Source: Adineta vaga
Taxonomy: Eukaryota; Animalia; Rotifera
Assembly (NCBI GenBank): GCA_021613535.1
Contig: CP075492.1
Location: 14,260,001-14,324,000, forward strand
Direction: 5' to 3'
Length of the DNA stretch: 64,000 bases
Shown: positions 1-39,643 of the stretch, piece after piece
Layout: each line of letters opens with the position of its first letter
Numbering within the stretch: position 1 is the first letter of the stretch
The notes under the pieces: model-generated
What the model was told of the DNA's origin: nothing
What the model saw: the letters and a program-made list of their open reading frames with translations, nothing else
Databases searched by the model: none
Program-made: the position numbers and the translations under genes

Positions 1-1475
1 AATGAATTGTATAGTCTTTCTCGGATACCATTTGCGAACAGATATCTGCGAGATCGTCTTTTTTCAACATATTAAATATATTTTGCTCATACGCCAAATT
101 CATTAAAATCATCATACTAAATCCAACAATTCGAACGTTTGGGTCAAATAAATACTCAGTGTATGATGTCTTGATAGTCAGATTTTGTCGTAAGATTATC
201 AGTAACTGTGTGACAATAGAACTTTGCATAGTTAATTTTCTGAAAGAAGGTGTCAGTGATAAGTTGTATAGGAAATAACAATGAGAACTTGAAAGATATG
301 CTTCTAATAGAGCACTGTCATACATATCCCATGTGGGTTCTACGCCTTAAATTAAACCAATAAGACATGGTTATGAAAAACTGAAAAATATTCTCACCAC
401 GTGTTGCAGTATATTTATCAAAAATAGATTTACTAGCCGCTATCAGGGATTTTGATAATAACGCAGCAACTTGATTGTCTTGTAGGAACTTATGTCGAAC
501 AATATATTGTGGACATATTTCAGTAAAGAAAATTTGTTTTGGTGTGAGTCGTATTTGATCGGGTTCCATTGTTTCGAATACTTGCCGATAATATTTTGAG
601 CTTAAACATTTTACAACAGAATTGAGTAACATATCAACAATATTCAGTTTAGAGCAGAGAAGAACCAGACGATTAATGACTTTGTATTTAACGTGATATG
701 AAGGATATTCGTTTCTTGATAGATCATCAAGAGCATGAACTAAAGTTTGAAGAAATGAGTCCGTTAAAAAGATAACGTGATACTGCACTGAAATAATTCT
801 TGTTTCATCGTTTTCCGATAGGGAAAGATTAACATTGGTATCATTAGATGTCGAAATGGTTTGATATCGAAATTTTCGAGATTTCGGTAGCTCAGTTATA
901 GTCATTTTTTTTTGTTCGGTTGGACGTGCCTTTGGAGCGTTTGGAGGTAGACGCGCTGTCTTAACATTTAGTTTTTCTGTAAGTTGCTTGATCATCCTGT
1001 TATTTTCATGCAAATTCACAACTTTAGTATTTACTTTTTCCGTCACCGGAACTACTTCTGTAGGCACGTCTCCATAGATCAAACCTCCCGATTCATTTTG
1101 ATATAAACATAGCTGTGTTACCAAATAACTTATTGAATTGAAACAGTCTTCTTCTTGTTTAGTCATTGTTACTGTTCGAGAATGATTCGATTTGATCAAT
1201 AACAATTCTAATGTTTGACTAATATAATCGAAAATTGGATGGTTTCTAAGAATTAGATGATCAAATAGTTTACGCATCTTCAACGTAGCTAAATCGTCAC
1301 AAAAAGTTGTGAGAAAACTCAATCCATCGTTTTTTTTCTTTTGTGAAGATGCTTTGTCCAAATAAGAAATAATATCGTCGAACAAATGTTTCATATCTTC
1401 AATTCTGAACATACGTCGTTTTTGACGAAGTCGACGGACAATAATCCCGTATCGCAATGACAAGTTCTCCATCAT
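1..1475 (-). CDS. Large alpha-helical (ARM-like) protein, 3'-truncated by the window edge; resembles the N-terminus of rotifer ARM+TIR proteins
   Basis: ORF 318-1490 (ATG ~1475). GTGAG..TTAAG intron at ~346-396, after which the frame stays open to base 1 (..EYLFDPNVRIVGFSMMILMNLAYE..). Leu-rich helical composition. No TIR is visible inside the window. Confidence 0.6.
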
Positions 1476-1600
1476 AACAGTATAGCTCAATATAAGAAAA
1501 TTATATGATAATCTAAAATTATAATGTTCGTTTATGTTTTAAAATATTTTATACTTAATTCAATGTTTGTAATAGAGAAGAAGAAAAAATCAGTTCTATC

Positions 1601-4600
1601 TTAATTATTATGAATGCCACAAAGTCGTCGAAAAGTGATAACATTTAGTCTGCTATATTCTAAGAATACTTCTAATGCTTTTTGATCTTTTTGGCTTGCG
1701 TCGTCGATCTTTTTTTCTATTTTTTGAACATCGTCTTTGGTCACTTGAGATCTTTCTTCAATGGTCCGTACCATAAGGTGTCTCTTTCGTCGACTGAAAT
1801 ATCGTAGAATTCTTTTCCTTAATTTCAACATTAGATTAAGATCAAGCAGCTGTTGAAAATTTTGAAAAGGTTTCATAGTTTTCGTTTTATCACCAGTATC
1901 AATTTTGTTATCTTGAATGCTTTCCTCTTCGTTATTGTCTGAATATCTTTCGGGCCACACTAATTCGTTCTCTTCAATTTTGGTGTTGAAAATATTGATT
2001 CGTCCATCAGCTATGATCAGTCGTTCGAAATATTCATGTGCCTGTTCCATGGTAAATGATAAGAAATTTGATGCGTATACAGAGAAATAACCATTTTTCA
2101 AATACGAATAATTAGATCCTAAGGAATCGTCTTGCCATCGCTCATAATCGGTGAATGGAGAGTACATAACAACTTGAGCATCATTTATATCTCCAGTTGG
2201 CGTAAATGGAGGAAAATTCTTTTTGGTAACGTTAGGTGCTTTATTGAGCCACCGTTTAGCACTATCCAAGAAGGCTTTCAAAACAACAATTGAGTAGTCT
2301 TCTGTCAAAAAGCGCGAAAAAGTAAAAATATTTTATAACTATAATTTTCATAGAACTCACGTTCTGCCGCTGCGTCCAGTTTAGCGGAATCCCCGGGGTA
2401 AGGAGTTCCATAAGAAGATTGTTTTTCGCTCAGAATCTGTTCCAAATCGTCAGTGACGAGAATTAAACTTGAGACAAGAACATCAATTTCATCGTGTGAA
2501 ATCCTTTCATTTTTCAGTCTGTTCTTCATCCTTAATTGATAATCTTGTTCTCGTTCTTGTCTCTGTGCACTAGTCAACTTTTGTAGGGCCAATGATGTAC
2601 TACCAAATACACCTTCCTCATAATTCGTTTCCGTAGGATTAGATTTCAATGTAATTTGATCTTGCGGATAATACTGACCAGTAACACCAGGTTTTGTATG
2701 GCGGAGCTACAAAAAATGTTCATTCTATTAGAGCAGATATGAAGAAAGCTTAACTATCCAATTTGGCTTCATACGTTAGGTTTTTTCTTCACTATGATAA
2801 AATTACTATTACTGTATATTTTAATGTATTCTCTAGATATTCGTTAACATATTTGAATACTATAAATTTTCTCCTACTTAAACTCACGCAGTATTAAATG
2901 GGACTTTTTAGTTTAACAAATAAACTATGTCAGTATCAGTTTTAATATCGATTGTTTTTTCGTTTTAAATGACAGTTAAAAGGTAAATAGAATTGTACTA
3001 CAGCCTTTTAGAACGCATACTCATCGTGTAAAAACTGAGCAATGAATTTCGTGATGATTACTAAAACCATTGTTAGTTATAACATACCAGTGCAAGTAGC
3101 ATTTGATCGTATTCCAGATCAAAATCACCACTGAATTCTAATTCAATTTCCGTTTCAAATATATTATAAAATAATCCATCAATTTTCATTGAATATATCC
3201 AAGCACTTTTGCCCATGTCCCGCGAACTATTTTTTCTTGCTACAATAGGAATCATTATTTTGTTCGAGGATTTACCATAATTAATTACATTCATACACTG
3301 AGCGTCTCCTAAATAATCGCCACTGAAATATATCAAGAGTAAATCGGACTGGTTAATCTGTGATTCTGACAAAGGATTGTTCGATGATGATTTACATATA
3401 GAGTAGCCTTCACCAGCTAAAGAAGTAGCCAAACGACGACAAATGGTTCGATCTTTCTGACAGTAGCTGAAAGCAATGTTATAAGTATCTGCACTCAAGC
3501 AGGTAACTTATTTTTTTCCGTCAAACTAACTCTGGGAGTAACTGCTGGTGGAATGCGTATCAACGATTTAAGTTTCAGTATTTTTGGTATATTTTCGTAT
3601 TTTGTTATCGCTTTAACTACATTTTCCGGCAAACCAATTAAATCTAAATAAAAATTGTGAAGGTCCATTATTGCTAGAACACTTTTGTCCAGACAGTATT
3701 TGTAAAAATAATTGACTACATGTTGATTCCAGTTTTTCAGCTCCAATGCTTTGTTTATTCTTTGAGTCGAAATCACATGTTTATTTATATAATTGTTGAT
3801 ATCATTTTCACAAATTCGTAAACTATTACCTTTCGATGTTATGAGAGTTATGTCGATTGCTAAAAGAAAAAAAGTTCATGTTATTATTTTTATTAAAAAC
3901 TTCTATTTCATGAAAATTAATTTAAAAATAAGGGATAAATGTGGATGTATATGATGCAGAATATTCAGAAATTATCTTGCATTCCGTTCAAATTCGAATG
4001 AAAAAATTCTGGACTCGATTGCTTTTGGTTTGTAATAACCAATATCTTGGAATTATAAGCTAGTCGCGTGACTATTGATGAGTGATAGGGGGCTGTAGGT
4101 CCGCGTTTTTCTGTATCCGAACCCGTAAAAAGTGGAAATATCGCATCTGATGGGTGGAATGTATGAGATAGTGTAAGGTGCTATAGTTATGGACCTTACA
4201 TGTATATTCTAACGACACTGACGGCACTAAAGAGCATCATGCTTGAAAAGTAATAAACATCGTTACTCACTCGACAAAATACATGGATACTGAGCAAAAC
4301 CATCTTCATCAGACTGCAATTTCATCATGGATTCGTTAAATATCTTGAACAAATCATCTTGGTTATCATTGAAAACAAGCATAATAGTCCAACAAGATCT
4401 CCTTTCTATTAGTTCTTGCCTTAATGCATGAAGCAAAAGTTCGACGAATTGTTGTCCAACATGAAAATTCTCCCAGTCGGTTAAAGAAAACGTAATTCTG
4501 TTTGCATTGGGACAGTAGTTAGTAATACTTTCTGTTACAGATACAATGAATTTTGTTATCGATTGTTTTAATTTGGTAATTGCTTTTCCGTCGTTCAGTG

Positions 4601-6094
4601 CAGGAGGTAACCAACGTTTGAATAAAACTTTTTTACCCGAATTTGTTTCAAAATACTCATTATTATTCAGTAAAGTAACATGCTGTTCAAGTATTCCCGC
4701 ATCTGTTGAAACAACAGTGATGTCACTCTAAAATAGAAGCGATAAAAACAATGTACAAAGCGCCAAAACATTGTTTACCGGCCAAACTACAGATGGATCA
4801 TTCTTGTGTATTTGGATCGAGATATTCGATGTTGATATTGCTCTTAATGACAATGATGAACAGAATTGATTTGATTGTTCAAGCATTGTGTTTGAAATGG
4901 GAGACGTAGCATTACTAACCGCTTTGGGAATTCGAAAAATTTGTAACTCCGTTTTTGAAACAACTCTTTCTATACGACAGCTGTATTGTGTACTAATTCT
5001 ATCCAACTGTGCTTTATTCTCATCGGATAGTAAAGCAGAATTGTCTATCGTTTTTATAGTACAGATAACTGTTTCACAGATGAGTTCATTGATTTCTTCT
5101 TTGATTTTCTCTATCAGATATTGAGGAGCATAGAATTCTTTTTGTTGAAGTCGTATCTTAACATTGTCATTGACATAATGATTCTCAATATCTGCAAGTT
5201 GTTGCAGGCAGTTGTCTATGAGATATTCATACTAAAAAAATATATAGTTACTTCATGTAACTCGACATATGTATTGTATCTACCTGAGTTTTATGCAATT
5301 TAAGTTCAAATTGTTTCAGCGTATGTTTAGTGGCAATCAATTGTAATTTCTTTTTCACAATTTTTACTAATTTTTTTCGTCCTAATAAACTAATCTTTAT
5401 ATCTATTCGGTTCGGATATGTATGACGAATAATAGCTAGTTCTGGTTTTCTGTTACTGATTATGGCTTGTTCAATTTCTTTTATAAAACTTTTTGTTTTC
5501 TCATCAGGCATTTTCATGTTTTCAACGTAATCTATTTGTTTATATAAAATCTGTGTGATTTCTGCTTCCGTTATATCGAATGGATGATAACTGAAATATA
5601 ATACCTTGTAGTAACCAGAAAACATTTTTGTTTTTTCCCATAATGTGAATATATTTTCGTGATCTATGATTTGCTGAATGACATCAATGGCTGCATCAGA
5701 AAAAATATGGCTTGACAAGTACATAACTGGAAATTGATCAATGAGAAATATGATTCGAGATCTAAATAATTTTACCTTTTTTATCAGTATCTTCTGAATT
5801 ATAGATTTTTGATTGTACTGATTCAAAGAGATCTTTCATGGCATCACGGCTAGACTTAACATTTTGCTTGTCACCATCTAAAGTAATGATCACATTTACG
5901 TCTTCTACTTTTATTGAGCACGTTATGTTGAAGATCTGAGATAAATAGCGTTGAAGTGTTGTGCAAAATGAAGGATTTTTAAAAAATTTAATATTAATAT
6001 GTGGATTGTCAGGAGTAATTGTGAAAGTTTTTGTATATGTTCCAATTTCACTATCGTTATCCATAGCGACATCACTTGTGTGTCGTCTACTCAT
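1601..6094 (-). CDS. KH-like/Macro-like/TIR protein, copy A (7 exons; 1-nt frameshift at ~3498; TIR catalytic Glu replaced by Val)
   Basis: Exons joined by GT-AG introns at ~5713-5775, 5228-5283, 4729-4778, 3860-4269, 2708-3087, 2302-2360. TIR box YNIAFSYCQKD..SDLLLIYFSGDY..CMNV. Colinear with copy B and shares the C-terminal motif RWLxKxxNVTKxNxPPFxPxGDINDA. Confidence 0.7.
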
Positions 6095-7689
6095 TTTGAT
6101 CAATGAAGTTTCTCTAACTGAACTGCATTACCTCTAAGTGAGACACATAAAATAAAATCATAAATACGATCTTCTATCAATTGAAAGGGACAATAAAAAT
6201 AGATTTTTTTCAATAACATACACACATACAAATATTATATATGTAATCAACAGAAATCTTTCTTGAAATTGTACATGGATATTATGAACTTTTTAGTTTG
6301 TAATAAATAACGACACCAAATGTAACTTACTATAGAGTGTGATTTAAGGTAAATAGTCATATGCCTTATTCATCGGAGCGTACGCAGAGCCTGAAAGAAA
6401 TCACTTCATGCAGACGTTTCATGAAAAGCAAACATTTGAGTTTTTTCCAACAATAACAAAATATTTCACAATAAAACGAGACAAGGGGTAAAACTCAAAA
6501 CAATTTTTTTCGAAGATTAACTTATGCAAATGATGAAGTACTATGGCCATGATTAAATTGTCCAAAATATCTATATGAAACATGATTCTCCAAGCATGTA
6601 CAGATTGCAAGGGTACTTTTGTAGACATAGTAATAGAATTTTTAATTCTTCAGAAAGAAAAGGGACTCAGCTACTGACATCTTATATTTTTATGGGGGAA
6701 TCATTAGTTGTGTACGAAGACTTTTAAAAAGTTAAGAGACGCTCGAACTAGACTTCTACGAGAATATTGCTCCTCTCCTTATTTTACTGAATTGTAGTTC
6801 ACCCATCGTAACTGTTATTTTATTTTTCATCATTATCGTCGGAAGTGATATTTTTGCAGTCATTTCTGGACAGTTCATTAACATAATTTTAAGTTTTTGA
6901 ATACCTTTTTTTGTCCGGTGTAGTTTGATGTACATCTGTCGGGGATAGGAAACGAAGACCATCAGAAGTTGTTCTCGAAGAATTCGAACTAAAACAACTT
7001 TCAGGAAGACTGAATCCTCACTATCCATTTCTTTTGTGGCGTTTCGACTAATCTCTTGTACTGTATGATGATTACTCTAAATGATATGAGACTCTGATGT
7101 CAACCCTATTAGACCCGATGAACTTCGTCTCGAATAAATCAAATAAAAATGCTAAAACGTGGAACTTACGTAGTCCATGTGCTAGTGTATCCTGTCCGTA
7201 ATAGAACTTTGTCTGTGATGGGAACCTATGTCTTTAAGAGTTACAGGAGAGGGAGTCGAAAATTCATCGATTTAAAAGTTTCACTGATTAGATGTTGAAT
7301 ACTTGCTATTTTCTCGTTTATAACCTTTATACACCCTAATTAAAATATTAAAAAAGAACTTACCACACGAAAGTATATACAGCAAAGCAAGTGAGCAATT
7401 TTTTTCGACGAAATCGGTATGTATTCGTTTGTTTTTCGCTGTTCCTTTTATTGTGTCATTGAAGTGCATTTTATTTTATTCCAAGAATAAAGAGAAAAAT
7501 ATTCTTCCGACTTATTAACAATGAATGTATGCTTGCATATTTGACTTTTACTTGTTTTAGAAGAGATCAGTAGTTTTTCTTGATAAAGTCGATCGACTTC
7601 GCTAACTGGATTACCATTGATTTGACTTTATTCTATACAAAAGTAAACACAATCTTCATCTAAATTAGCATACAATTATCTTGTTCGAA

Positions 7690-10600
7690 ATGTCCGCAAA
7701 AAAAGACCTACCACCCAAAGATCCAAAAGCCATTGGTTACTGGGTGGCAGATCCAATTCCAAAAAGATTCTTACAGCAACCAAAATTTTGTCTTCATTTT
7801 CAAGAATATCTTCAGAGTTTATTTCGAATTGAATTAGTAATAATGTTACAACAGCCAGAGCGTGAAGATGGAAGTTGGTGGAACAAGCCTCCGCCAGGTT
7901 ATATGATACAATTATTGGCAGGAGAAAAGAACAAAGAAATGGGACAAGCTGTATCAGATTTTTGTAGGAACTATTTCAATAGCATACAATCAGAAACAGT
8001 TTATAGTTCTCAAGGTATGAAAACAGAAAAGAAAAAGAAAGCGTTTTGAATAAGAAGGGTGTGGGTGTAGGTGGAATTGATGAATAAATATATCACATCC
8101 ACACTTTTCTTATACAATGCTAGATTTGTCCAATTTTCCAAACCATTTTTTAAAAGGGAAATCGAGTTATAAACGTTTCCCAAATGATCTATATTTACAT
8201 ATGTAAAGATACCATTTCTGACTCGGGTGCCCTTTTTTTTCATTCGAAATGATCATTTGTCTCCCCGATCAGAAATTTGCCAGATCCTCGGCTTAATACA
8301 GAAGTATATACTGATCTATTTTCAGTTTATTTTGGTTTTAGTTAACAAATGGCTATTGTATAAGTCAACAAAGAACAATTATCTTCGTTGCATCCAGAAT
8401 ATCTTACAAGATAAATTTCAAGATATTTTTACTGTGTGTATAAAAGAGAGAGGAGCATTAAAAGTTCATTACTTAGTAAAAGATCCAGTCAGTGTATTTA
8501 ATAGTAAAGACATTAATATGATACTTAAAGATCTTTCTGAAGAACTGCTCTTACTACCAATAGGACGTGAACAATCTCTACAACTAAGAAAAGAATTAAA
8601 GAGGACAATAGCAAAAGTGGCAAACAATAATCAAGTGTATATTCATTCTGGTTTTACAAGAACAGGAGTTATAATTACACAAACAAAACTTGTGCTTTTT
8701 GGAAATAAGGAAATTGTACAAAATATAAAAAGTGACTTGATACATATTATTAACAAATATCGTGTAATGACGTATAAATTTGATTCTATAGATCCATCTC
8801 AGGTAATTGATGTATTGTTTTCTGTTATGTGTTCTATGTTGAAGATACTTTTCGTTTAGATTAAATTTATTCTTGAGAGCTGTTCTCATCAGTTACGGCA
8901 AATCGAAAAGAAATACAAGAAATTCGGTGTTGATCTACGATTAAGAGCACATGAATTTGCTTCACCTCAATACTTAAAAGATGAGATCGAATCTTTCGTC
9001 ACGCAGCTATTGTTGCATTCGTCTGTTAAAACAATAAAGAGCGTGCAATTATCAAAAGAGGTAGCAGAACAAGCACAAAAGCACTTGCAATATATTGCAT
9101 GTCAAAACCGTTGTGATATCAAAATTGAGTTAACATACAAATCTCGGTGTTATAAAGTACCCAAAGCACAAACACTCTCTACATACTTATCAAAATCCGT
9201 AATAGATCAATCTAATAATTTCAATTCTTCCCCATATGTGTTTAACAAGTTAAATATAGCGAACGGATCAATTGAAATTCGTACAGGAGATATAACTAAA
9301 TACGATGTGAGTTTGATACTAGTTTTGCATGGAAATCTTGTGTTTTTTTTTTCGCAGGTGGACACAATTGTCATTTCTAACACACCCGATGGACTGAAAG
9401 AAGGTGTGATTGAACAAGCTGGCATGTTTATCTACGAACATACTTTTCCAGATTCCAATAGAATGAAGTTTACAGAAACTAACGGAGGCGCTCTGCAATG
9501 CAAACGAATTCTGTTTTCAAACTGGATACCGTCTATGAGTTCCGAGAATGACAATGAACTAAAAAAATCCATAGAAGGCTTTCTGTCAAAATCTATTGAA
9601 TATGCAATAAAAGATGAGAATTCTTCATCTATTGCGTTTGCGGTATCTGATTCATGTCCTTATGAGACTGTTCTTGCTCAAGAAATGATAAGTACAGCGA
9701 AGCGCCAGCTCGAATCGACCAATTTACAAGTACGCATCTTATTCATTCTATTTACTGACCAACACACTCTTCGAAATGAATTCTTTTCCGCTCTCAGCAT
9801 AATGCAAGATGTGTATGCACAGTTCGAGTGGCCAACTGCAGGTAAGATTCATCGGTGCTAAAGCACTGCTATATATTAGATTGCTTTCAGTTGTCAAAGC
9901 AACGCTCACAGGGTCCAATGATGCCGATATAGACAAATGTCAAGAAAAAATGTACAAATGTCTGAAACGTTCTGTTGATTCGCTGAAATTAACAAATTCA
10001 CATGGTATATTTCAAAACTGGGATCAATACACAATAAATTCATTTTATAAATATTGCAAAGATAAATGTGTTTTGCCACAAATCAACCAAACAAAGGATG
10101 AAATCGACCTGATTGGGCCAATTAATTGTGTGCGTGATGTTCAACAAAAATTGAATTTTTTATCACAGCTTGTAAAAGAAAGAGCATCGCGCATCCCTAC
10201 AACACAACGTCCCAGTTCAGCTGTCAGTCGTTCAGCGCGTGCTGATATTACATCTACTACAGGCCATGCAAAAGTATATAACATTATGATTAGTTATTCG
10301 GAACGCGACATAAAATATTGTCAACGTCTAATTGATCGACTAGCTGAAGAGGGGTTTTCAATTTGGGCTGAACCAGCTTTTCTTGATCGGCAACGTGATG
10401 TTGCATCGCAGATGAACAAATCAGACTGCATTATCCTTTGTGTTAGTGAAAATTACTACGAAAATCAATCATGTGAGAAAGAGGCAAGGTATGCGTTTCA
10501 AATCGGTAAATATGTGTTTCCAGTGAAAATTCAAAACGATCCATTGATCTGTTGGCAACGCGAAGTATTTAAAGATAAATTATTTTTTCAACTATTCGGA

Positions 10601-12021
10601 TCGGAAAATCATTTTGATTTTGGATATGGAAATCTATTACTAAGGATAGTGAGTATTAGAAAAAAAATAGTTTTTGTATTGCTAGGACGACGTTTATTGC
10701 TCATGTAGTTACAATATACACAGCCAGGGTTTGTTTCTCTTCTGCAACAAAGAACTGTACGCCTACAACAAGATAATGACGAATCGTATGGTCTTATGAC
10801 AGTTGAACGTCGACGAACACTTTATGATAACAAGATCAGATCACTTATGAACGGTGGTCGCGTAGAACAAGAAGAAATGAAACATTTAACTGAACAATTA
10901 CATACGATATTAAATGCAGCGCGTAATGATTACATTGAGGCAATCGATATTAACAAGAGAGATGATGATGCACTCTCAAAGGTGGAAAATACCATAGGTG
11001 AGCTTTTCCTCAAATGATTTATCAGGAAAACAAAATGAAAACATAGATGTAAGGAATGTTGATACTGTGGATAGTTTTGTGATGTTTGTAGTTTCAACAG
11101 TATCACATTGACTAACAACACCAACATGATTCTTGATAAACTACATACCCAAACATTGCCAACACCTCTGCTACCTTGCATATTCTCTATATACATATAT
11201 GACTCTTACCACCGTACTTGCTAGTGATTTCTCGCTCTCAATATGTTCAATATCTTTCATATTGTATCGTCTGTTCTGAACAAAAACTAGTGTTTGCTTG
11301 AATTTTGCTGCAAAATTAATTTCTCTATTATCTCTGTATATGCCAGAAAATTTAATATTTTACAACCACTGATTTTCTCATCTGTATAGTATTCATTTTA
11401 GAAAAGGAATTCGGTTGGATACAACGTTGGCTGAGAAAATCAACAAATGTTACAAAAAACAATTTACCACCCTTTGCTCCAAGTGGTGATATTAATGACG
11501 CCCCGTTTCCCATGCCAGATTATATTGCTAAGTCTTTGAATCTATATGATTCATCAGTTTCCTCAAAGAAATCTCCGATTAAACTTCGACACGCTTTCGA
11601 ATGCGATATTTTTAAACGACCTACAGAGCAACCTTTTACACGTACTCTATTCAACATAATTCCTGCAAACAACGAACTCACCTACGGAAAATGTACCCAG
11701 CTGCTAGTACCATTTAGTACCTCGCTTCAAACGTCCATTAGTGATGTTTTTGATAACGATATCATTCCGCAGAAAGCAGCGACATTACCTGTGATACCAC
11801 TTGAGTATATATCATCTAATACAGTTGGCACACAAAAATATCGCAAAACTACTAATTTAAATGACGCGCCTAAAAGACCAATGAAAATTGGGAAGAAGCG
11901 CATCGGTAAAAAGCATCCTCGTCCTACCCGTGAACTATTAAACGTGTATTTACAAAGTTTTGCAAAGCGAATGAACGAAAATGCTCTTGAATTTGAAAAG
12001 TTTTGCTTGATAAATGCATAA
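7690..12021 (+). CDS. KH-like/Macro-like/TIR protein, copy B (7 exons, apparently intact, TIR catalytic Glu present)
   Basis: Introns at ~8015-8341, 8803-8859, 9307-9357, 9842-9890, 10649-10708, 10998-11401. Macro-like segment SIEIRTGDITKYD-VDTIV..TNGGALQCKRILF..SSIAF. TIR segment YNIMISYSERD..GFSIW..SDCIILCVSENYYENQSCEKEARYA..VFPV. Confidence 0.75.
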
Positions 12022-13050: not shown

Positions 13051-13431
13051 AGATTGATTTGAAATCTTTTCAACAACTGCTTACCAGCCGAGACGGCAGT
13101 CGATCAACTGATGAAAAATTCTTTCTCTTCCTTTCTCTTCCTTTCTCTTCTTTTAAAGTGTGAAAGAAATGCAATAGAAAAAATATAAGGTTAACAACGA
13201 TGTGTGTGGGACAAACATGATTGTGTTGCTTTCTGTATATTTGTGTTTACATAACAAGAATTTTTTGTTTTTGCATGGATTGGGTGAAGTTGTGCTGCGA
13301 CATGAGTAGTATAGTCATTTTTTTAAAATACATGGTAATAATTGTCATATCTTTCTCTGCTCTTATCTCCATTGGTATTGTGCAATGTTATTCTATATAA
13401 AATACGTCATTTGATTTTAAAAAAACATAGT

Positions 13432-14265
13432 ATGGCCGATGATCAAAGTCTCGTTGTTGGGTGGTTACAAGCAGAATCTACATGGCAACAACAATTTCAT
13501 GGTTGGGATTTTTCACAACTAACAACAAATGGACGAATTTTATTCAACATGTCTGAAGAACAACTCGGTTGGGATTATACAAACATCATTTGTCAAACAG
13601 TAGAGAAACTTGCTGATTCAAGTGACGACATCTATTTGCTCGATTTAGGAACGGGTGGTGGTGAATATTTAGACACAATTCTATCTAAACTATCAACCAC
13701 AAGAAAGAAACTTGTAATATACGCAACTGAATCTTATCAACCAAATTTTTTACTTGCAAAAGAACGTTTGATGTCTCATGGTGTCATTGTTATTTATACT
13801 AACGAAGATAGTTTAGATAGTTTGTTACCATTCTCAGATGACGAAATCAAATTTGATTTGATCATCTCCCGTCATACATGTTATAATATTCGTGAAGTTG
13901 AACGTCTTCTCAAAGATGGAAGTGGTATGTTTATAACTCAGCAAGTAGATGGAACATCTAGTCAAGATTTGATTGAATTATTTGATCATCAACCAAAATG
14001 GCCATTTTTTAATCTTGATTATGCTTGTCAAACATTGAAAAGTCAAGCTCAACGAATGAAACTGATTCGTGCTGAAGAATCGGAAACAAAATTAGTATTC
14101 AAAGATATTAATGCATTAATCATTTATTTACATGCTGTACCATGGATGGTTGAAGATTTTAGTGTCCTGAAGTATCAACATGTGCTTTTGAAACTTTATC
14201 ATAGTCGACAACAAGCTTTAGAATTCAATAGTAAATATATGTTATTGCAAGCCATCAGAGAATGA
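13432..14265 (+). CDS. Class I SAM-dependent methyltransferase, bacterial-like, intronless
   Basis: Motif I LLDLGTGGGE, post-I TESY, motif II FDLIISRH, plus FxGWDFS, FITQQV and PWMVEDFSV segments recalled from a bacterial family. Likely start is MADDQ at 13432. Confidence 0.8.
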   Translation: MADDQSLVVGWLQAESTWQQQFHGWDFSQLTTNGRILFNMSEEQLGWDYTNIICQTVEKLADSSDDIYLLDLGTGGGEYLDTILSKLSTTRKKLVIYATESYQPNFLLAKERLMSHGVIVIYTNEDSLDSLLPFSDDEIKFDLIISRHTCYNIREVERLLKDGSGMFITQQVDGTSSQDLIELFDHQPKWPFFNLDYACQTLKSQAQRMKLIRAEESETKLVFKDINALIIYLHAVPWMVEDFSVLKYQHVLLKLYHSRQQALEFNSKYMLLQAIRE

Positions 14266-15238
14266 AGACTTCTTCTATAAGAAAATATTTTTATGAGAAG
14301 TTGATGAAGAATTTACGAGCATCGGTTTTTGCGTTTTTTTTCTACCGTGGATTGAAGAATAATGGAAGAAAGCAAACGTGGTATTTTTTTTATTTTCATT
14401 CTCGTTTGGTTTCTTCCTACTTACTTATATAATAAATAGTCGATAAACATAGATTCTATTACGTTGTTTTTCGTTTTTTAAACGAACTAATAATAAAAAT
14501 TTGCATTGTTATTGTTAGGATTAAAATGGTAATTATTCTTTTTCTTAGCTATAAAAAGCAAATACCTTTTTATATTCATATAGTATGACGGTACCGATGA
14601 AAGTGATAATGATGATGATGATGATGATTCTGCACTCATTCATCAACGTCCATGTAAGTTATTCACTCATAATTACAATACTGATAGGAAAATTTTATAA
14701 TTTATCCGTCTTGTATAGTTCCTGACTACTGTCAAGATGAAACTCGAGGTATTGAATCCTTTTCCTCCTGTCTAATGCGACACTACCATGCTTGTCCCAT
14801 ATTTTATACGTTTTTTGACAACGACACTCGATTTTATTCAACATTTCTCCAGTATTCGATATGTTCGTATTCTTATCGATGAATATAATCTTAATTCAAT
14901 TATGGATTGGAATGAATGGAACACTCTTTTTCCTACATGTTAACAGTTAAAGAAGATAACAATAGAGAAATAGCCAAATATAGCAGGTGGAGAACGATAT
15001 GTGCAAAAAGCTGCGGAAATACGAAGAGTATTTGCACAATATACAATGAACGTTTATTATCTATTCATGTTTTTTTTGACAAAATGCATCTATATATATA
15101 TATCGTGATAATGTCGATGGCTTTCGCCCTAACCATCAATTCTTATCTGACTTTTTCGTTGTATTTGTCATGTTTTATATATTTTTATCAAAAAAAAACG
15201 CATATAAGTAACCAAAATTCTTTCTCTAGATAATTATC

Positions 15239-16213
15239 ATGAATGTCACAATACTTGATGATTATTTTGATACAATTCGTACACTTCACTGTTATAAAAT
15301 GCTAAATGGTTATAATGTTACCATATGGAATGATCAAGTACAGGATATAAATACATTGGTCGATCGCCTTAAAGATACGGAAATTTTGGTATTGATTCGT
15401 GAACGTACTCGGATTACGGGTGAACTGCTCGAACGATTACCTTATTTGAAACTAATCAGTCAACGTAGTGTTTACCCACATATTGATATTAATGCTTGTA
15501 ATCGTTTGAGTATTATAGTTTCATCCAATCAACATACGGATACTCCTTCATATGCTGCAGCTGAATTAACTTGGGGACTTATCTTAGCAGCGATGCGTCA
15601 AATTCCTCAACAAATGGCTGCTCTTAAAGAAGGTAAGTGGCAAATTGGTATTGGTGCTACATTACGTGGAAAAACACTTGGTATCTATGGTTATGGTAGA
15701 ATTGGAAGTACAGTTGCCGGATATGGAAAAGCATTCGGTATGAATATACTTATTTGGGCACGTGAAGCGTCTCTTGCTCGTGCTCGTTCAGATGGATATA
15801 CAACAGCTAGTAGTAAAGAAGAATTTTTTAAAACATGTGATGTTTTATCACTTCATATGCGTTTGGTAGATGCAACACGTGATATAGTTACTAGTGATGA
15901 TCTTGCTTTGATGAAGACAACTGCTCTTATCGTTAATACTAGTCGAGCAGGACTCATTCAATCGAATGCATTGATCAGCGCATTACGTGCTGGTCGACCT
16001 GGTATGGCAGCTGTAGATGTATTTGAAAATGAACCCATGCGAGATACAACAAATCCACTTTTAACGATGAATAATGTTATTTGTACTCCTCATATTGGTT
16101 ATGTTTCAATTGATGAATATGAAATTCAATTTACTGATATTTTTCAACAGATTCTGGCCTATGCCAATGGAAATCCTATTCATGTTGTCAATCCACAAGT
16201 CATTCGACAATGA
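15239..16213 (+). CDS. D-2-hydroxyacid dehydrogenase (SerA-like family), bacterial-like, intronless
   Basis: [13 protein letters not shown] Rossmann motif, VNTSRA (Arg), DVFENEP (Glu), CTPHIGY (His). Confidence 0.92.
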
Positions 16214-16294
16214 TATTGTTTGTTCTTTTGTTTTCACTATAAAAATCTTATGATTCGAAATACAAAAAATTCCATGAAATTTTATTAAAAAAAA

Positions 16295-17173
16295 TCAAAC
16301 AGGTCTTTCACCAATAATTGTTGCACGATGCATTTGTCGACGATTAGGCCAATAATCACCGATAGCATAATGTTGAGTTGATCGATTATCCCAAAATGCC
16401 ACATCATTTTCTTTCCAATGCCATCGTACTGTATATTCTGGTTTGTTAACTAAACTAAATAAATAATCTAATAAAATATGACTTTCTATATCATTTAAAC
16501 CAATTATTCTTGTTGTAAATGTCGTATTAACAAATAATAATTTACGTTTTGTTATTGGATGTGTTCGAATTACTGGATGTATAACAGGTGGATAATCTTT
16601 TTTGGCTTTATCTAATTTTTCTTGTGCATCAGGTCCATGAACGTTTGTTAAATTAAAATTTTTTGCATAAGAATGTTCAGCTGATAATTTACTCAGAAAC
16701 TCTTGCATTGGTGATGACAGAGAATCATAGGCTAAATACATATTTGACCATAGAGTATCACCACCAGTTGATGGAAGTTCACGTGCATATAAAATACAGC
16801 CAAGTGCTGGTGTTTCTGTGAATGTTATATCTGTATGCCAACTATCATTACCTGGTTTTCTATCAAAATCATATTCAAGAAGCATTAATTCCGGTGTACC
16901 TGGAACATGAGAATAAAATGGATGTGTATGTAAACTACCGAATAATTGAGCAAAATCCCGATGTTGCTGTGGAGTTAGATGTTGATTACGAAAAAATATA
17001 ACCTGATGTTTGATTAATGCTCGTTCGATCTGTTCGACAATATTTGGTTTATTCACTGCTTCTGATAAATCAATATCATGAATAATTGCACCAATAGATG
17101 GTACTAATACTTCAATATTTAAATCGTTTGTATCAGTTCGAATAGTTGTTTGTTCATTATGATCGGAACTCAT
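16295..17173 (-). CDS. tauD: Taurine/alkylsulfonate dioxygenase, TauD/TfdA Fe(II)/2OG family, intronless CDS
   Basis: HxD motif WHTDITF, GGDTLW, HPVIRTHP, distal His in WDNRSTQHYA, RxMHRATI. Confidence 0.9.
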   Translation of the reverse strand: MSSDHNEQTTIRTDTNDLNIEVLVPSIGAIIHDIDLSEAVNKPNIVEQIERALIKHQVIFFRNQHLTPQQHRDFAQLFGSLHTHPFYSHVPGTPELMLLEYDFDRKPGNDSWHTDITFTETPALGCILYARELPSTGGDTLWSNMYLAYDSLSSPMQEFLSKLSAEHSYAKNFNLTNVHGPDAQEKLDKAKKDYPPVIHPVIRTHPITKRKLLFVNTTFTTRIIGLNDIESHILLDYLFSLVNKPEYTVRWHWKENDVAFWDNRSTQHYAIGDYWPNRRQMHRATIIGERPV

Positions 17174-18426: not shown

Positions 18427-19557
18427 TTCAATTATAGATGTATACACTTGTTTTCTTCTTCCACAAGAGCAAGATAAATGTGTATGTTTATCTTCTTTGT
18501 TTGTTTTGAACTTATGAACACAAAGAAACAATGAAGATGTCAACGATTGGTCAACAGAATAACCAAGACAAAATATATTCTACATGATATTTATTCATAC
18601 ACATATATCGTTGGTATATATGTGTATGAAGAGAATCAACAAAGTAACAATAATTATTTCTGGAATGAAGCAAACGCTTTATAATTGGAAGAAAGATTAT
18701 AGACTAGATGTAAATGCGAATGATTGTGAGCTTTTTTCGTGTAAAATTTAGTTTCTGTGAACAAAGACTATTGTATGTACTCTCAGGCGAAGAAAAAAAT
18801 TTATTTTCTATAATAAAATTTTTTAACTCTGGGATTAATTTTTATAGTCGTGACTGTCTATCAAAGTGTTATTATTCAAAAAGTGAAATGAGATTCATTG
18901 AACAGAGGAAGGCAGACTCTTGTACTTCAAGTTATTATGCGGTATCAGATATAAATTGAATATTAGTGTATCAATCAATCATGATTTATTATCAAGATCA
19001 TGTTGACGACATTGTCATTGCGTTGTTGCATCATACATGAAGACCTGGAACGAATTGAGAGAGTAATTATCGTCTCTCCTCTCGATTCAAACATACTACT
19101 TAATAAAATAAAAATGATGAAAAGAGTAAATCTGAAAACAAGATTAACAATTAAGAGGATTATCACGAGAACATAAACAAACGACGTATATTCACATATT
19201 GCATCTTTATTGCCTTTTGTATTTTAGTATGGTTGTTAAAAAATGATTCTATTATTGAATAAAACATAAATAAAAGATTTAATTACTTCGTCCTAATTTG
19301 ATATTTTTCTTTTAAATGTGTTCAATGGCTAAACAAAAGCATAAGAGAAGGCCATGATATAGTTAAGAACAGTAAACATGATTCTTCTACAATCAGGAAC
19401 CACCTACAGATTTTTCTCTTAAGAGGAAAATCTGCTTAAATTTTTATTAGATTGCTTTATATGCGTCTTATAGATTCTGAAAATGAACATCTTAATTGTT
19501 TTTTTTTCAAACTATAAACAATTCAACGGTTGCGCATATTCTCTTTCATCACTCAAA

Positions 19558-20508
19558 ATGAACTCGTCGACGTATCAACTACCAAATATTCTTATTGATT
19601 GTTCAATCATAACATTCTCGGCAATCACTATTTGCATTTCTCTCGCAATATTACAATTGATTCTATCTGAGTTAATCGAAAGAAAAAACTTTCCACATCG
19701 AGTGGCATCTCTTCTAACAGCAAATGTTTATTTATCATTATTCTTCTTCTCCGTATTAGCACTTGAACAATTTGTACGTGCATATCTGGGACATCGTTAT
19801 TTGATAGTATCATTAAGTGATGGAATCTATTGTCAATTTCGTTGTTATTTGCAATGGGTGTCCATTTGTGGAATCATGTATTCAAATACTTTACAAGGAA
19901 TCTATCGTTTATGTCGAATTGTTTTTCATACAAAGCAAGTACTTCAATCATTTCACTTCTACATGAAAATGATTGTGATTCAGTGGATTCTTTGTTTCAC
20001 AATTCTCATTCCTTCATTTTTTCTTGATGGTTATAAGTATTCGGTAGAGAACTACTATTGTGAAAATGATTATAGAAACATTCAAAGTACATTCTTTAAT
20101 GGTGCTTTTTCTTATTCTATTCCATTGGAGGTAACGACTACATGTTATGTTTATACATGGATGAAAATGCATCGAAGAGATAATAATTTGTTACAAACAA
20201 TGTCACGGATTCGAGAGATGAGTGCACGACGTGATTTGATTGTACTTTTTCGAATCTGCATCATTCATGGATTACTATTGGTATTCTTCACACCTTCTGT
20301 AATATTACTTTTTATTTATATTGGCACCGGATATGTACCTTGGTGGTCATCACAAGTTCAATGGCTTGTTTTGAGTTTCTCGATAGCTTGCGTTAGTGTT
20401 TTATTACTATTTGTATCACCTTATGTTCGAGAATTATGGATAAAACGATTTCATCGTCAACATCGTCACGATCAAACAACCGTACAAATTATTATGAGAG
20501 TAATGTGA
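19558..20508 (+). CDS. Rhodopsin-like 7TM GPCR, paralogue 1
   Basis: Seven hydrophobic helices, Cys at top of TM3 (YCQFR), YRL at the DRY position, ECL2 Cys, TM7 SP. Intronless. Confidence 0.85.
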   Translation: MNSSTYQLPNILIDCSIITFSAITICISLAILQLILSELIERKNFPHRVASLLTANVYLSLFFFSVLALEQFVRAYLGHRYLIVSLSDGIYCQFRCYLQWVSICGIMYSNTLQGIYRLCRIVFHTKQVLQSFHFYMKMIVIQWILCFTILIPSFFLDGYKYSVENYYCENDYRNIQSTFFNGAFSYSIPLEVTTTCYVYTWMKMHRRDNNLLQTMSRIREMSARRDLIVLFRICIIHGLLLVFFTPSVILLFIYIGTGYVPWWSSQVQWLVLSFSIACVSVLLLFVSPYVRELWIKRFHRQHRHDQTTVQIIMRVM

Positions 20509-34288: not shown

Positions 34289-35502
34289 TTAAAACAAGAT
34301 TTTAATGTTAAAAGAAGCTTAGAAATGATGTGTAAATGTAGATGAATTTCAGTCCTTTTTTGTGTAGGACATGATATATATATAAGCAGTATTAATGGAA
34401 GCACTCTCGAGAAAAGAACAGAAATTATCTCTATTAATAAAACTTTTTAACTCTGGGATCAATTTTCGTCATCATGATTGTGTGTCAGATTTTTATTAAT
34501 TCAATAATAAATTTAGAGTCATTTAGTCAAACCATATTAAACGATAAATGCATCGTTCAGAGAAAAACCGAAATTGACAAAACAATTTAGATCGCAGTAT
34601 TTTGATGTGCTTTTTACTTCCATTCACCTTGTTCTCCCTTGCTCTCCGACATAAACTGAGTGTTCGTATTTACGACATCTTTGTTTATTGCGTTGTTATA
34701 TTACAGTTACAGATGAGGTCGTTGCAACCCATTGAAAAGATAATTGTTATCTTAGGACATAAAGTTGACGAAGCCTATGAATCTGAAAACAGAATAAACG
34801 ACCGAGACGATTTTCACGAGAAAATGAACTAAAGACATAGATTCACATATTTTACCTACCACTATTGTTATTGTTACAATATGATCATTTCAAGTAGAAC
34901 ATGCATTTAAAGTTACGCGATGCGACTCAATCTAATAATTTTTTATTCATAATATTTTTAGTGGCAATATAAAAGAATGAAAGACTATGCCAATGCCAAA
35001 GCAAAATATATTAAACTAAATATTTTTATAATGAGTAAGCGCCCACAGATTTCTCTCCCTGGAAGCACAATATAATTAAATCGACATTAAAACTCTTCTT
35101 AAGCATCTTATGAATATTAGGAGAGAATAGTTTCCATATTACTTTTTTTACAGTTATAAACAATTCAATGTTTACCTGTATCATCTCATTATTCAAAATG
35201 AACTCGTCGACGTATCAACTACCAAATATTCTTATTGATTGTTCAATTATCACATTCTCTTCAATTACTATTTGCATTTCTCATTTCGTCTAGTTGACTT
35301 GGTCGCGATCAGTCGCATTCGTCCAAGTGAAATAAACATATATATCGTATCTCTCGTCTTTCTACTTTTTTCTTTCGACCAGCTAAAAAGTCCTAGGACT
35401 TAAAAAAACTGGTTTTTCATCGAGATCCTCTGTACTTCATCAACCCAAACAAGAAAACAAAAACAATCTACATCAAATTATCAACAACTGGTGCTGATTT
35501 TA

Positions 35503-36960
35503 ATGCCTTCCAAGAGAGGAAGGGGTGGCGGAGGTCAACAGAGACGCTACCACAGCGTGGACAACCAACAAAGAGCAACCACCACACAACGAAAACAAGG
35601 GCCACAAAGCTCACAAAGCATACAAAGCCCACAACGAACAACACAAGATGGCAAAGCAGGACCATATGCTTTAAAATCAAGCCAACCAACATTTAGTATC
35701 GCCCCTCTAATTCTAGAGGGTGTTAACTTAAACAAATTGCAGCTAAATGATATATTGAAGCAACATCTTGCTGAAGTCAATATCCATGACATCCAACTTG
35801 GACGAAATGGAATATTCACATTATATGCAAGAGATGTCAAATCGTTCAACAACATATTAAACGACTTTTCATCAATATTATCGTCAAACGGTCAACCATC
35901 AGCCACGGTATACGTTCCAAGATCTATACAAAGAATCAAGGACACAGAAAAGATCGCCTTCGTAAAAAGAGTCGATCTAGAACTACCAAACGATCGAATA
36001 ACTGAAGCACTAAAGAACGTTGGTCTTGAAGTAACAGAAGTTATTCGATTAACAAGCAAAGATGGTAAGACTCCAACACGAACAGTCAAGATATCATTTA
36101 GCGATGCAACAAATCGAAATATCTTTGTGCAAACTGGTTTACAAGTGGATTGCATGCACTTCACCGCTGAACCAGCGACACAAAATTCCAAACCGGTGCA
36201 ATGTTACATTTGCTTAAAATACAACCATGTAGCCAAATACTGCAAAACCAAGCAACAAGTATGTAGTCGATGTGGTGAAAATCATAGCAACGACAAATGT
36301 ACTGTTACAGATGATGCAGTCAAGTGCTACAACTGTAAAGGTAATCATATTGCTACTTCCAAAGAATGTTCACATTATAGAGAACAAGAAAAGAAGATGC
36401 AAAACATGGTTAACCAATATGCAACAACAAGCAAACAAGTAACACAAGCACCATCAATCTACAACACACATGACTTCCCACCTCTATCACAATTCAACCA
36501 AACACAAAAACAACTATTAACGGACAATTTATTCGACGATATCATTAATGCTCTTACCAGCAAAATGGAAACCATCATCGAAAAAACTACCAATCGACTA
36601 TTCAAAGCACTACATCAGAAGATCAAGAAGATCGAAAAATCATTCGGACTCCTCGATCGTAATAATGAAGAAAAATATATATTAACTGATTCAGACTCTG
36701 ATTCCAACGAACAAAGTCAAGCAGTTAAGATCATCAAACCAAAACCAAAAAAACAACAGAGTGAAGCTGACAAATCGTCTACAACAGAGAATGTCACTTC
36801 AAATAAACCTACTATGCCATCAACTCCTACTACGTCAAAAGACGCACAAAATAAAAAAGAAGGATCCAATACAAACAAGAGAGCCCTTTCTTCCAACAAC
36901 TCTCCTGATGCATCTATAAACGACAAGAAAACACTTAAAACTAGCAGCAACGATGCTTAG
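35503..36960 (+). CDS. LINE ORF1, gag-like with three CCHC zinc knuckles
   Basis: CYICLKYNHVAKYC, CSRCGENHSNDKC, CYNCKGNHIATSKEC. Confidence 0.92.
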   Translation: MPSKRGRGGGGQQRRYHSVDNQQRATTTQRKQGPQSSQSIQSPQRTTQDGKAGPYALKSSQPTFSIAPLILEGVNLNKLQLNDILKQHLAEVNIHDIQLGRNGIFTLYARDVKSFNNILNDFSSILSSNGQPSATVYVPRSIQRIKDTEKIAFVKRVDLELPNDRITEALKNVGLEVTEVIRLTSKDGKTPTRTVKISFSDATNRNIFVQTGLQVDCMHFTAEPATQNSKPVQCYICLKYNHVAKYCKTKQQVCSRCGENHSNDKCTVTDDAVKCYNCKGNHIATSKECSHYREQEKKMQNMVNQYATTSKQVTQAPSIYNTHDFPPLSQFNQTQKQLLTDNLFDDIINALTSKMETIIEKTTNRLFKALHQKIKKIEKSFGLLDRNNEEKYILTDSDSDSNEQSQAVKIIKPKPKKQQSEADKSSTTENVTSNKPTMPSTPTTSKDAQNKKEGSNTNKRALSSNNSPDASINDKKTLKTSSNDA

Positions 36961-39643
36961 TTTATGCCATATCAACATTAACTCAATTACCAAACACAAA
37001 GATGAACTCCTAGCCAGATTCTCCAAATACGATATTATCTCTGTTAATGAAACTAATCTAAAGAGCGAAAGACCATTCACTCTTTTTGGTTATAACATCT
37101 TCAGAAATGATCGAATAGGACAAGCTGGGGGTGGAGTATTACTAGCAGTGAAACAACATATCAAGTGTCAAGAAGTACTAAACAAAACAACCTGCAAGAA
37201 TGAAGCGATAGCAGTAGAGATTCGAACTAAATCATTCAAATCAATACTAATATCCTCCATTTACGTACCACCAAAAGCAAAGATCGATATCAACTTATTC
37301 CACGAACTTTATAACGTCAACAACAACTGCATTATCATGGGTGATCTTAATGCAACATTATATAATATGGGATCACAACAAGCTAATGCTAGAGGAAGAC
37401 AGCTGCAAGAATTATTTAAAGATGGTCTTATTGATTGTGTCGACGATGATAGTCCAACTTTCGAAAAAAATGATTATGAAGTTAAACTAGATTGGATTCT
37501 AGCAAGTCAACCACTTCTTTCATTCATATCAAACGTTGAGACTCATCCAACAATCGGTGCATTAAATGGCCATAAACCATTAACATTTGATATTCCTTGC
37601 GGAGCTGAACCCAAACCGGCTTCGTCAAGAATTTCATTTAATTTCAAAGCAGCAAAATGGTCAAAATTTAGGTGCAAGTTAGATCAACAACTGATGCTGT
37701 GGAAAAATGATCATCATTTAGATTCAACAGCAGACATAGAAGAATATACATCATTCATTACCACTAGTATACTAGAAGCAACAAAAGAAGCCGTTCCACA
37801 AACAAAGCAGATGATCCGAACGTATACACCAAGTGAAGTATCGATAAGCCTGATAAAACAAAAACATCAAGCATATCGAAAATGGAAGAAGACTGGAAAC
37901 AACTTAGATAAACATCTATATTACAATTCCAAAGTCTTGCTTACAAATTCACTTAGAAACGACAGAAGAAATAACTTCAACAAGTTAATGTCATCTTTAT
38001 GCCATAAGAAAATGTATTCGGACAAAGTTTGGTTGACGGTGCGCAAGTTCCACAACAAAAGGATCAAGCAAACCTACGCCAACATCATGAAATACAACAA
38101 TACAACTGCAACATCAGACAAGGAGAAAGCAGACTTATTTGCAGATTACTTCGAAAATGAAGTCTACTCTCACACTGCTAATACGTTGCCACTTCATGAT
38201 CAAGTAACACGCCAAGCAAACAAAGTCAAAAGTAAAACTATAACCTCTTCAAACACATCAAAGTGGAAGCAAATCAAAGAAAAAGAAGTCAAAAATCATA
38301 TAAGACAACTTAGAAATAGCTCCACTGGTCCAGACAACATTCATAACCGATGTTTGAAGAATCATTCAAAATTACTGGTACAGCATCTAACAAATCTGTT
38401 TAATGCAATTTTGAAACAAGGTTATATTCCAGCAATGTGGAAAAAGGCTAATATTATTCTTCTATTAAAGCCAAAGAAAGACAAACAACAACCGTCTAGC
38501 TATCGACCGATTAGTCTCCTTAGTTGCTTAGGCAAACTATTGGAGAAAATAATCAAACAACGTTTAATGCTCGAACTTGAACGACGAAACATCTTACCAC
38601 AACATCAAGCCGGATTTAGACCAGGTAAAAGCACTATATACAACATCGTGCGATTAGAAAGATACGCTGCAGGACAACTTAGACGACCACGTCGACGACG
38701 TCACTCAGCTGTCATTCTTTTCGACATCAAAGCCGCATTTGATTCGGTATGGCACGATGGTTTGATATACAAGCTTAATGGTCTACGTCTTCCCTGTTTC
38801 ATCATCAACTATCTGATCTCATTCTTAAGCAATAGAACGGCTGCAATTGAAATCGAAAATATATTATCACGTCCGTTTAATCTGAAGAGCGGTACACCAC
38901 AAGGATCTCCGTTATCACCATTACTTTATATTATGTATACGGCAGATTCGATGAATGGAATACCAACTCATACAGAACATGGGTTGTTCGCCGACGACAC
39001 TGCATTATGGACATCTGGCAACACCTTAACAAATCTTAACACCAGATTACAACAATCCATAGATGCATTCGAAAGTTGGTGCAAGTCATGGAAATTAAAA
39101 CTTCAACCAACTAAGACAGAGCTGATACACTTCAGCATACATCCAAGAAAACACTACAAGAATCCAGTGAAAGTTAAAGTTGAAGACACCATCATCAAAC
39201 CACTGGACTCCACACGTTACTTGGGTGTAATTATAGATAAAAGATTAAAATGGCGAGCACATCTCGAACATATTGAAAGCAAGATTGCTCCTCGGATCGG
39301 TCTACTTCGATATCTTTCGAGAACAGCATATGAACCCAACAATAAGACGATGATAAATATTTTCAAATCAATTGTACGCACAGTTATCATTTATGGACAT
39401 CCTATTCTCCTTACTGCTGATCAAAAAGTATGGGACCGTTTACAAATCATGCAGAATAAAGCAATTAGAGCTGCACTCGGACTACCCATATATACATCTG
39501 TCAAATATATCCACAAGATCAGCAACATTCCAAAAATCAAAGATTATGCAATAGGACTACTTAAACATACACTTCAAAAGGCAACAACAAACAACGACAT
39601 TACACTGAAGAATCATCTACAATGCATCTTAGACAAAATTTAA
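36953..39643 (+). CDS. LINE ORF2, AP endonuclease + reverse transcriptase
   Basis: EN motifs NINS, NET, GGGV, MGDLNA, LDW. RT motifs YRPISLLS, QAGFR, FDIKAAFDSVWH, GTPQGSPLSP, FADD, YLGV. No RNase H or C-terminal CCHC seen. Overlaps ORF1 by 8 nt. Confidence 0.96.
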   Translation: MLSLCHININSITKHKDELLARFSKYDIISVNETNLKSERPFTLFGYNIFRNDRIGQAGGGVLLAVKQHIKCQEVLNKTTCKNEAIAVEIRTKSFKSILISSIYVPPKAKIDINLFHELYNVNNNCIIMGDLNATLYNMGSQQANARGRQLQELFKDGLIDCVDDDSPTFEKNDYEVKLDWILASQPLLSFISNVETHPTIGALNGHKPLTFDIPCGAEPKPASSRISFNFKAAKWSKFRCKLDQQLMLWKNDHHLDSTADIEEYTSFITTSILEATKEAVPQTKQMIRTYTPSEVSISLIKQKHQAYRKWKKTGNNLDKHLYYNSKVLLTNSLRNDRRNNFNKLMSSLCHKKMYSDKVWLTVRKFHNKRIKQTYANIMKYNNTTATSDKEKADLFADYFENEVYSHTANTLPLHDQVTRQANKVKSKTITSSNTSKWKQIKEKEVKNHIRQLRNSSTGPDNIHNRCLKNHSKLLVQHLTNLFNAILKQGYIPAMWKKANIILLLKPKKDKQQPSSYRPISLLSCLGKLLEKIIKQRLMLELERRNILPQHQAGFRPGKSTIYNIVRLERYAAGQLRRPRRRRHSAVILFDIKAAFDSVWHDGLIYKLNGLRLPCFIINYLISFLSNRTAAIEIENILSRPFNLKSGTPQGSPLSPLLYIMYTADSMNGIPTHTEHGLFADDTALWTSGNTLTNLNTRLQQSIDAFESWCKSWKLKLQPTKTELIHFSIHPRKHYKNPVKVKVEDTIIKPLDSTRYLGVIIDKRLKWRAHLEHIESKIAPRIGLLRYLSRTAYEPNNKTMINIFKSIVRTVIIYGHPILLTADQKVWDRLQIMQNKAIRAALGLPIYTSVKYIHKISNIPKIKDYAIGLLKHTLQKATTNNDITLKNHLQCILDKI

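Follow-up and report, generated by a model that had tools for sequence, protein, structure and literature searches.

The window analysed here is a stretch of 64,000 nucleotides (nt) of chromosome 3 of the bdelloid rotifer Adineta vaga (C3:14.26-14.32 Mb in the genome compared, G000, which has 100.8 Mb in six contigs). It holds a head-to-head pair of genes, A and B, and the 5' part of a third gene, C, which together with a fourth gene, D, form a block whose order is conserved. A and B both read as KH-repeat, Macro, KH, TIR proteins, with a scaffold of macro-PARP origin, and they are related by an inverted duplication. The block may best be explained as a co-regulated four-gene NAD+/ADP-ribose immune module of bdelloids, in which B and C would be probable NADases and A a scaffold; we give this explanation a probability of roughly 0.45. 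The literature searched holds no description of the KH-Macro-TIR family or of the four-gene block, in line with an earlier reading of the same DNA made from its letters alone (the sequence-only reading), which knew of no characterised example of the architecture. Family members appear in the databases as 'unnamed' or 'TIR domain-containing'.

The A/B pair and its macro-PARP scaffold

The start codons of the two divergent genes lie at 6094 on the minus strand and at 7690 on the plus strand, 1596 nt apart, close to the ~1.6 kb given by the sequence-only reading. Each gene has six GT-AG introns at equivalent positions with identical phases (1,0,0,1,0,1), and the spliced models share 25% identity across ~950 amino acids (aa; E=2e-75), as befits the diverged old paralogues of the same domain order that had been proposed. 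The features of the pair are as follows.

1601-6094, minus strand: gene A, with KH-like repeats, degenerate Macro, KH, TIR and helical tail
6094-5776, 5726-5284, 5231-4779, 4727-4271, 3859-3088 (contains the frame break), 2706-2361, 2301-1601, minus strand: exons of gene A
4290-4835 (approximate limits), minus strand: degenerate Macro of A, without GD(I/V) or GGxL and with a deletion of ~20 residues
3489-3527, minus strand: frame break of A, in the part of exon 5 that links the last KH to the TIR; candidates are an assembly error, a real allele or an extra 38-nt intron
3088-3480, minus strand: TIR of A (Pfam TIR_2, E=2.8e-6), with Val at the catalytic position, 3286-3288
6095-7689: divergent intergenic region, candidate shared promoter, with no notable repeat
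7690-12021, plus strand: gene B, intact, 1127 aa, seven exons
7690-8014, 8342-8802, 8860-9306, 9358-9841, 9891-10648, 10709-10997, 11402-12021, plus strand: exons of gene B
9260-9815 (approximate limits), plus strand: Macro of B, from the B-only profile, with GDIT at 9286-9297 and phosphate-binding loop 2 shortened
10274-10633, plus strand: TIR of B (Pfam TIR_2), with Glu at the catalytic position, 10481-10483

The exons of the window were searched singly, the joined A and B models were used for local comparison only, and full-length Rotaria proteins were folded in their place. Single exons match Pfam TIR_2 clearly in B (E=6e-15) and less strongly in A, while matches to KH_PARP14_2, 5 and 8 are weak and under the cut-off (best E=1.5e-5) and the Macro is undetected by Pfam. 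The Atlas feature match for the KH part is 0.81. A library search returned 116 relatives, and all those looked up by name are bdelloid. The near relatives finish in a TIR, some with an N-terminal SAM, and the remoter ones are Macro-WWE-PARP proteins. One of the latter, from Rotaria socialis (P0061), is collinear with the B-type through KH, Macro and KH (E=2e-35) and diverges just before the WWE domain. A profile built from TIR-bearing B sequences only matches the macrodomains of PARP9, PARP15 and PARP14 with E values of 2e-8 to 1e-6, the best being PARP9 macro 2 (E=2e-8); the A-only profile and the N-terminal profile gave no convincing PDB match.

Structure models agree with these matches. The AlphaFold model of a B-type Rotaria relative, P0023, has a mean predicted local distance difference test score of 79, and it superimposes on PARP14 macro 2 with Z 20.3 and a root-mean-square deviation of 2.7 across 169 residues, and on TIR domains with Z 16-17, so that the middle domain predicted to be a Macro does take the Macro fold in the model. 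The model of an A-type relative, P0075, also gives a Macro (Z 15.6) and a TIR, from an alignment that contained B rows. The KH part is seen as a secondary-structure pattern in P0023, in addition to the weak Pfam matches: KH-like units recur, one of them apparently split by the Macro, and after it comes a further unit that carries a long helix. This pattern fits what is described for PARP14 and PARP9, a Macro in a split KH and then another KH with a long helix (PMC10450202). The C-terminal PARP (ADP-ribosyltransferase, ART) domain is not present in A or B, and TIR_2 and a helical tail stand there instead.

The Macro and TIR folds, the collinearity with a macro-PARP and the KH-Macro layout make it well supported, from sequence and models, that A and B are PARP14/PARP9-type KH and Macro scaffolds carrying a TIR where WWE-ART stood, and the replacement of ART by TIR proposed by the sequence-only reading is upheld. 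Tandem KH-like domains also appear to be common to the two families, and the Macro folds and sequences nearest to those of the A/B family are PARP14 macro 2 and 3, PARP9 macro 2 and PARP15 macro 2. Macro-PARPs differ in having two or three Macros rather than one, whereas A and B have no RRM, WWE or ART, end in a TIR, have degenerate Macro loops and in some copies carry an N-terminal SAM. If this origin is true, the PARP14 sensing scaffold is modular, and a TIR has taken over from a writer (ART) as its NAD+-consuming output.

No SAM exon remnants are present in the intergenic region of the window (6095-7689), where scores are inside the shuffled range, and hidden SAM exons between A and B were thus ruled out. 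The R. socialis sister of window A (L059:7900-8798) has an N-terminal SAM, and the window copies have none. At a Rotaria sp. Silwood2 locus (L060:8487-9212) the A/B intergenic region holds a long inverted repeat resembling a miniature inverted-repeat transposable element.

Conservation of the four-gene block

Head-to-head A/B pairs occur at 11 loci in Adineta, Rotaria and further assemblies, with modelled starts ~0.5-2.3 kb apart. Four are in A. vaga (the window, C1:11.45 Mb, C3:4.26 Mb and C3:4.87 Mb), and the layout is also found in four other assemblies, in R. socialis (twice) and in Rotaria sp. Silwood2; L064 and L065 are too short upstream. A-type and B-type sequences form two clades (support 100/99). 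Because separate FastTree trees of A and B mostly mirror each other pair by pair, the block appears to have been inherited as a unit. A metagenome scan added two short contigs, and no relatives of the C3:4.26 A exon came out of a word search.

The sequence-only reading treated A and B as a two-gene unit. The pair itself stands, but that reading missed both the frame break in A and the position of A at the head of three closely packed same-strand genes, of which the next starts at 1475 and continues beyond the window.

1476-1600, minus strand: A-to-C gap of 125 nt, candidate trans-splice site; the acceptor is T-rich (its TAG ends at 1513) and has no in-frame donor to match
1-1475, minus strand: 5' part of gene C, a long helical region (ARM-like by inspection, no Pfam ARM match)
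G000 C3:14257952-14258671, outside the window: TIR of gene C
G000 C3:14256660-14257712, after C: gene D, ANK-ART

In this block the TIR of C and gene D are known from match coordinates alone. C has a TIR at its C-terminus, preceded by a long helical region, and 4/4 copies read have the catalytic Glu; it lies directly after A at 10/10 loci checked. D is 60% identical to a relative having the R-S-ExE motif, and it is in the L054 copy that this motif was read. The gene after C encodes an ART in four blocks, as ANK-ART in the window's block, L054 and L056, and as ART-TPR in L062, an R. socialis block of the SAM type; since the former three and L062 use different families, the type of enzyme at the end of the block seems to be kept although its gene family differs. 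At L045:9526-10000 (C3:4.2665 Mb) the gene after C starts like the ART-TPR gene of L062, and the locus stops before the ART. The families are large: across G000, matches to C-like TIRs number at least 36, with tandem arrays at C5:11.69-11.76 Mb, those to ANK and/or ART 62, and B-related Macro exons 20.

The gaps between these genes, ten A-C and three C-D, measure 30-299 nt (median 53), and in 13/13 junctions a T-rich YAG acceptor followed by AT lies 11-66 nt ahead of the start codon. AT follows the acceptor in 10/90 cis introns, and the pattern with at least 7 T in 12 occurs in 0/348 overlapping non-coding control windows; the window's own junction has 6 T. Spliced-leader trans-splicing is listed for rotifers in the chaetognath genome paper, and the junctions bear its signature, which is not proof of an operon. 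Tunicates, nematodes and chaetognaths likewise have spliced-leader operons in which same-strand genes are less than 300 nt from each other and an acceptor stands immediately ahead of the start codon (PMC12460157). Functionally related signalling genes are reported to be depleted from chaetognath operons (PMC12460157), whereas the rotifer block consists of such genes and is a candidate operon by its sequence signature. A fusion of A and C into a single long gene with TIR-ANK-ART at its end can be rejected, as there is no shared in-frame donor, several A-C and C-D gaps hold no GT and the acceptor-to-ATG distances share no frame; in addition, A stops at the point that matches the end of B, and NCBI models keep the genes apart.

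Motif states and the proposed roles of the genes

The constant difference between A and B is in the Macro and not in the TIR Glu. In the alignment every A-type sequence lacks GD(I/V), ~20 residues and the GGxL loop, while every B-type retains GD(I/V) or a near variant, and B also retains the GGxL loop. The presence of GDIT in B and its loss from A, as first noticed from the letters, therefore agree with the alignment, and the loss of the ligand motif would make A a poor candidate for an ADP-ribose sensor.

At the catalytic position of the TIR the window has the codon GAG (Glu) in B and GTA (Val) in A, at the positions that had been assigned to them. The A/B residues at this position are V/E in the window, D/E in R. 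socialis L059, A/E at C3:4.26, S/E at C3:4.87, E/E in L053, L054, L055, L056 and L060, and Q/T in L062. The ten pairs thus divide into four in which A is without and B with Glu, five in which both have it, one in which neither does and none in which the states are reversed. Among the TIRs read, several of them close kin, Glu is retained in 15/20 A-type and 23/26 B-type. Window A and the L059 A are sisters (support 0.96), so that Glu has been lost in A at least twice and, in the lineage of window A, in common to two genera; the idea that the loss is limited to A. vaga was dropped, as that sister has Asp. Across bdelloids the head-to-head arrangement is thus conserved and the catalytic asymmetry is not: Glu loss in A is a bias and not a rule.

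The following course of events would account for these observations. As homology and trees show, an ancestral macro-PARP of the PARP14/9 type exchanged WWE-ART for a TIR, the TIR-bearing gene then gave rise to A and B by inverted duplication, and the block was passed on and re-duplicated whole. Transcription probably runs out from a single divergent control region, on one side into B and on the other into an A-C-D polycistron, which would then be resolved by spliced-leader trans-splicing. On an immune trigger A and B would probably assemble via their KH scaffolds or on nucleic acid, clustering the TIRs; B and C, the most consistent keepers of Glu, would cleave NAD+, and D would write arginine ADP-ribose marks. 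A would be mainly a scaffold or regulator whose own chemistry is dispensable, because no copy retains the Macro motif and the TIR Glu has been lost at least twice. A bolder form of this explanation is an operon-like NAD+ defence block in bacterial style, in which A, B, a helical-TIR NADase and an arginine ADP-ribosyltransferase share one divergent promoter as a single sense-and-respond circuit, with A repeatedly made a catalytically dead partner; it is tentative and on balance somewhat unlikely. If the module is as described, with or without this bolder form, it would show that a eukaryote can hold the parts of NAD+ immunity in linkage and under joint transcription, in the way of bacteria.

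Several observations weigh against the immune-module explanation. B copies without Glu exist and carry Thr, Gln or Ser. Glu is necessary yet not sufficient for TIR NADase activity. The B Macro, like that of A, lacks the PxIGxG phosphate loop, which the rotifer macro-PARP retains, and with this loop lost it is doubtful whether even B binds ADP-ribose. The putative immune role rests on the families involved, and the text of the one paper checked on bdelloid infection RNA-seq does not name TIR, PARP or NAD. Finally, window A has its frame break, and the block is in decay on C1 and C6.

In the model taken from the sequence-only reading, B is the NADase executor and A, without catalysis, a sensor, regulator or inhibitor, after the pattern of plant paired NLRs. 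The A. vaga copies fit this division, with Glu absent from 3/3 full-length A copies (Val, Ala, Ser) and present in 4/4 B copies, as do the Asp in the R. socialis sister and the want of any reversed pair. However, three quarters of the A-type TIRs and half of the pairs keep Glu on the A side, one pair is Gln/Thr, A has no Macro ligand motif with which to sense and C and D are left unaccounted for; the bias survives, and the strict division of labour is unlikely. The repeated loss of Glu in both clades with the gene kept would also suit TIRs that serve as non-enzymatic assembly domains, as in TLR/MyD88 signalling, with an A-B-C adaptor complex as recruiter or switch of the ART product. The TIR of A without Glu is as conserved as the other A domains (46% vs 47-59% for relatives), and the Hydra TRR-2 TIR is among the nearest folds. 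Yet the bacterial NADase TIRs of SPARTA and AbTir are equally near, all of 20 close B-type TIRs (45-70% identity) and the C TIRs read have Glu, and the adjoining ART and Macro domains point toward NAD+ chemistry, so that we regard a purely structural role as improbable.

The state of window A bears on whether the genes function together at all. Read with six introns, A meets a stop at codon 678, ahead of the TIR, which is in another frame. An extra 38-nt intron (3526-3489) could bridge the two frames and is present in no orthologue; because the orthologues have a single uninterrupted exon alignable on either side of the site, a one-base break is likelier, with an assembly error or a recent allele as its possible source. 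If A were freshly broken, the linkage could be a relic of inverted duplication and operon inertia without joint function. Other copies are indeed damaged: at C1:11445700-11451400 (L042/L043) B has a stop in its C-terminal tail and A several stops, ending inside the Macro region, the A copy at C3:4.87 Mb carries a second frame break, and at C6:701400-704100 (L048) ANK-ART and C-TIR remnants with stops lie head-to-head with the 3' part of B, A and most of C and B being lost. Against this, window A has one break in 1150 codons and every splice site canonical, and as ~3.6 further stops would be expected from 2% neutral change (P = 0.02 for none), long decay is unlikely. The block also persists across genera and old duplications and keeps a terminal ART of differing family, which makes a functionless relic quite doubtful. 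For the immune-module explanation, the natural Glu/Glu, non-Glu/Glu and non-Glu/non-Glu pairs are a ready series on when TIR catalysis is needed in animal immunity.

Known systems and other features of the window

SARM1/TIR-1 and other TIR NADases share with A and B a TIR_2-type domain with the alpha-C Glu, which B has and window A, with Val, lacks, and a SAM in the SAM-bearing copies. C likewise has a long helical region before its TIR, a likeness of domain layout. The rotifer A and B differ by their KH-Macro front end. Type II Thoeris couples a TIR and a Macro at one locus, as the rotifer genes do, and the Atlas holds a 1234-member bacterial cluster of TIR_2 and Macro. The rotifer Macro, however, comes from an animal macro-PARP and is joined to the TIR in one intron-bearing protein, there is no transmembrane Macro effector and the ThsB_TIR match is under the cut-off, so the bacterial and rotifer fusions look convergent. 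The plant paired NLRs (nucleotide-binding leucine-rich repeat receptors) RPS4/RRS1 are also head-to-head TIR genes with unequal retention of catalytic residues, but the rotifer pair has no NB-ARC, LRR or integrated decoy, is part of a four-gene block and shows the asymmetry in 4/10 pairs, its conserved property being the linkage.

Other genes of the window were noted as follows, some of them assigned by inspection.

13342-17173: intron-poor methyltransferase-like, D-2-hydroxyacid dehydrogenase-like and TauD-like open reading frames, which look horizontally acquired (by inspection)
19483-20508 and 40389-43545: three near-identical open reading frames resembling G-protein-coupled receptors, the first separated from the other two by the retroelement
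35491-39643, plus strand: overlapping open reading frames of 489 and 896 aa, gag-like and endonuclease-reverse transcriptase, an apparently intact non-LTR (long terminal repeat) retroelement (by inspection)
46044-50024, plus strand: unbroken open reading frame of 1326 aa in a low-GC stretch, with no obvious family
54135-58061, plus strand: gene with a LamG-like part and then many DFDGDG (FG-GAP-like) repeats (by inspection)

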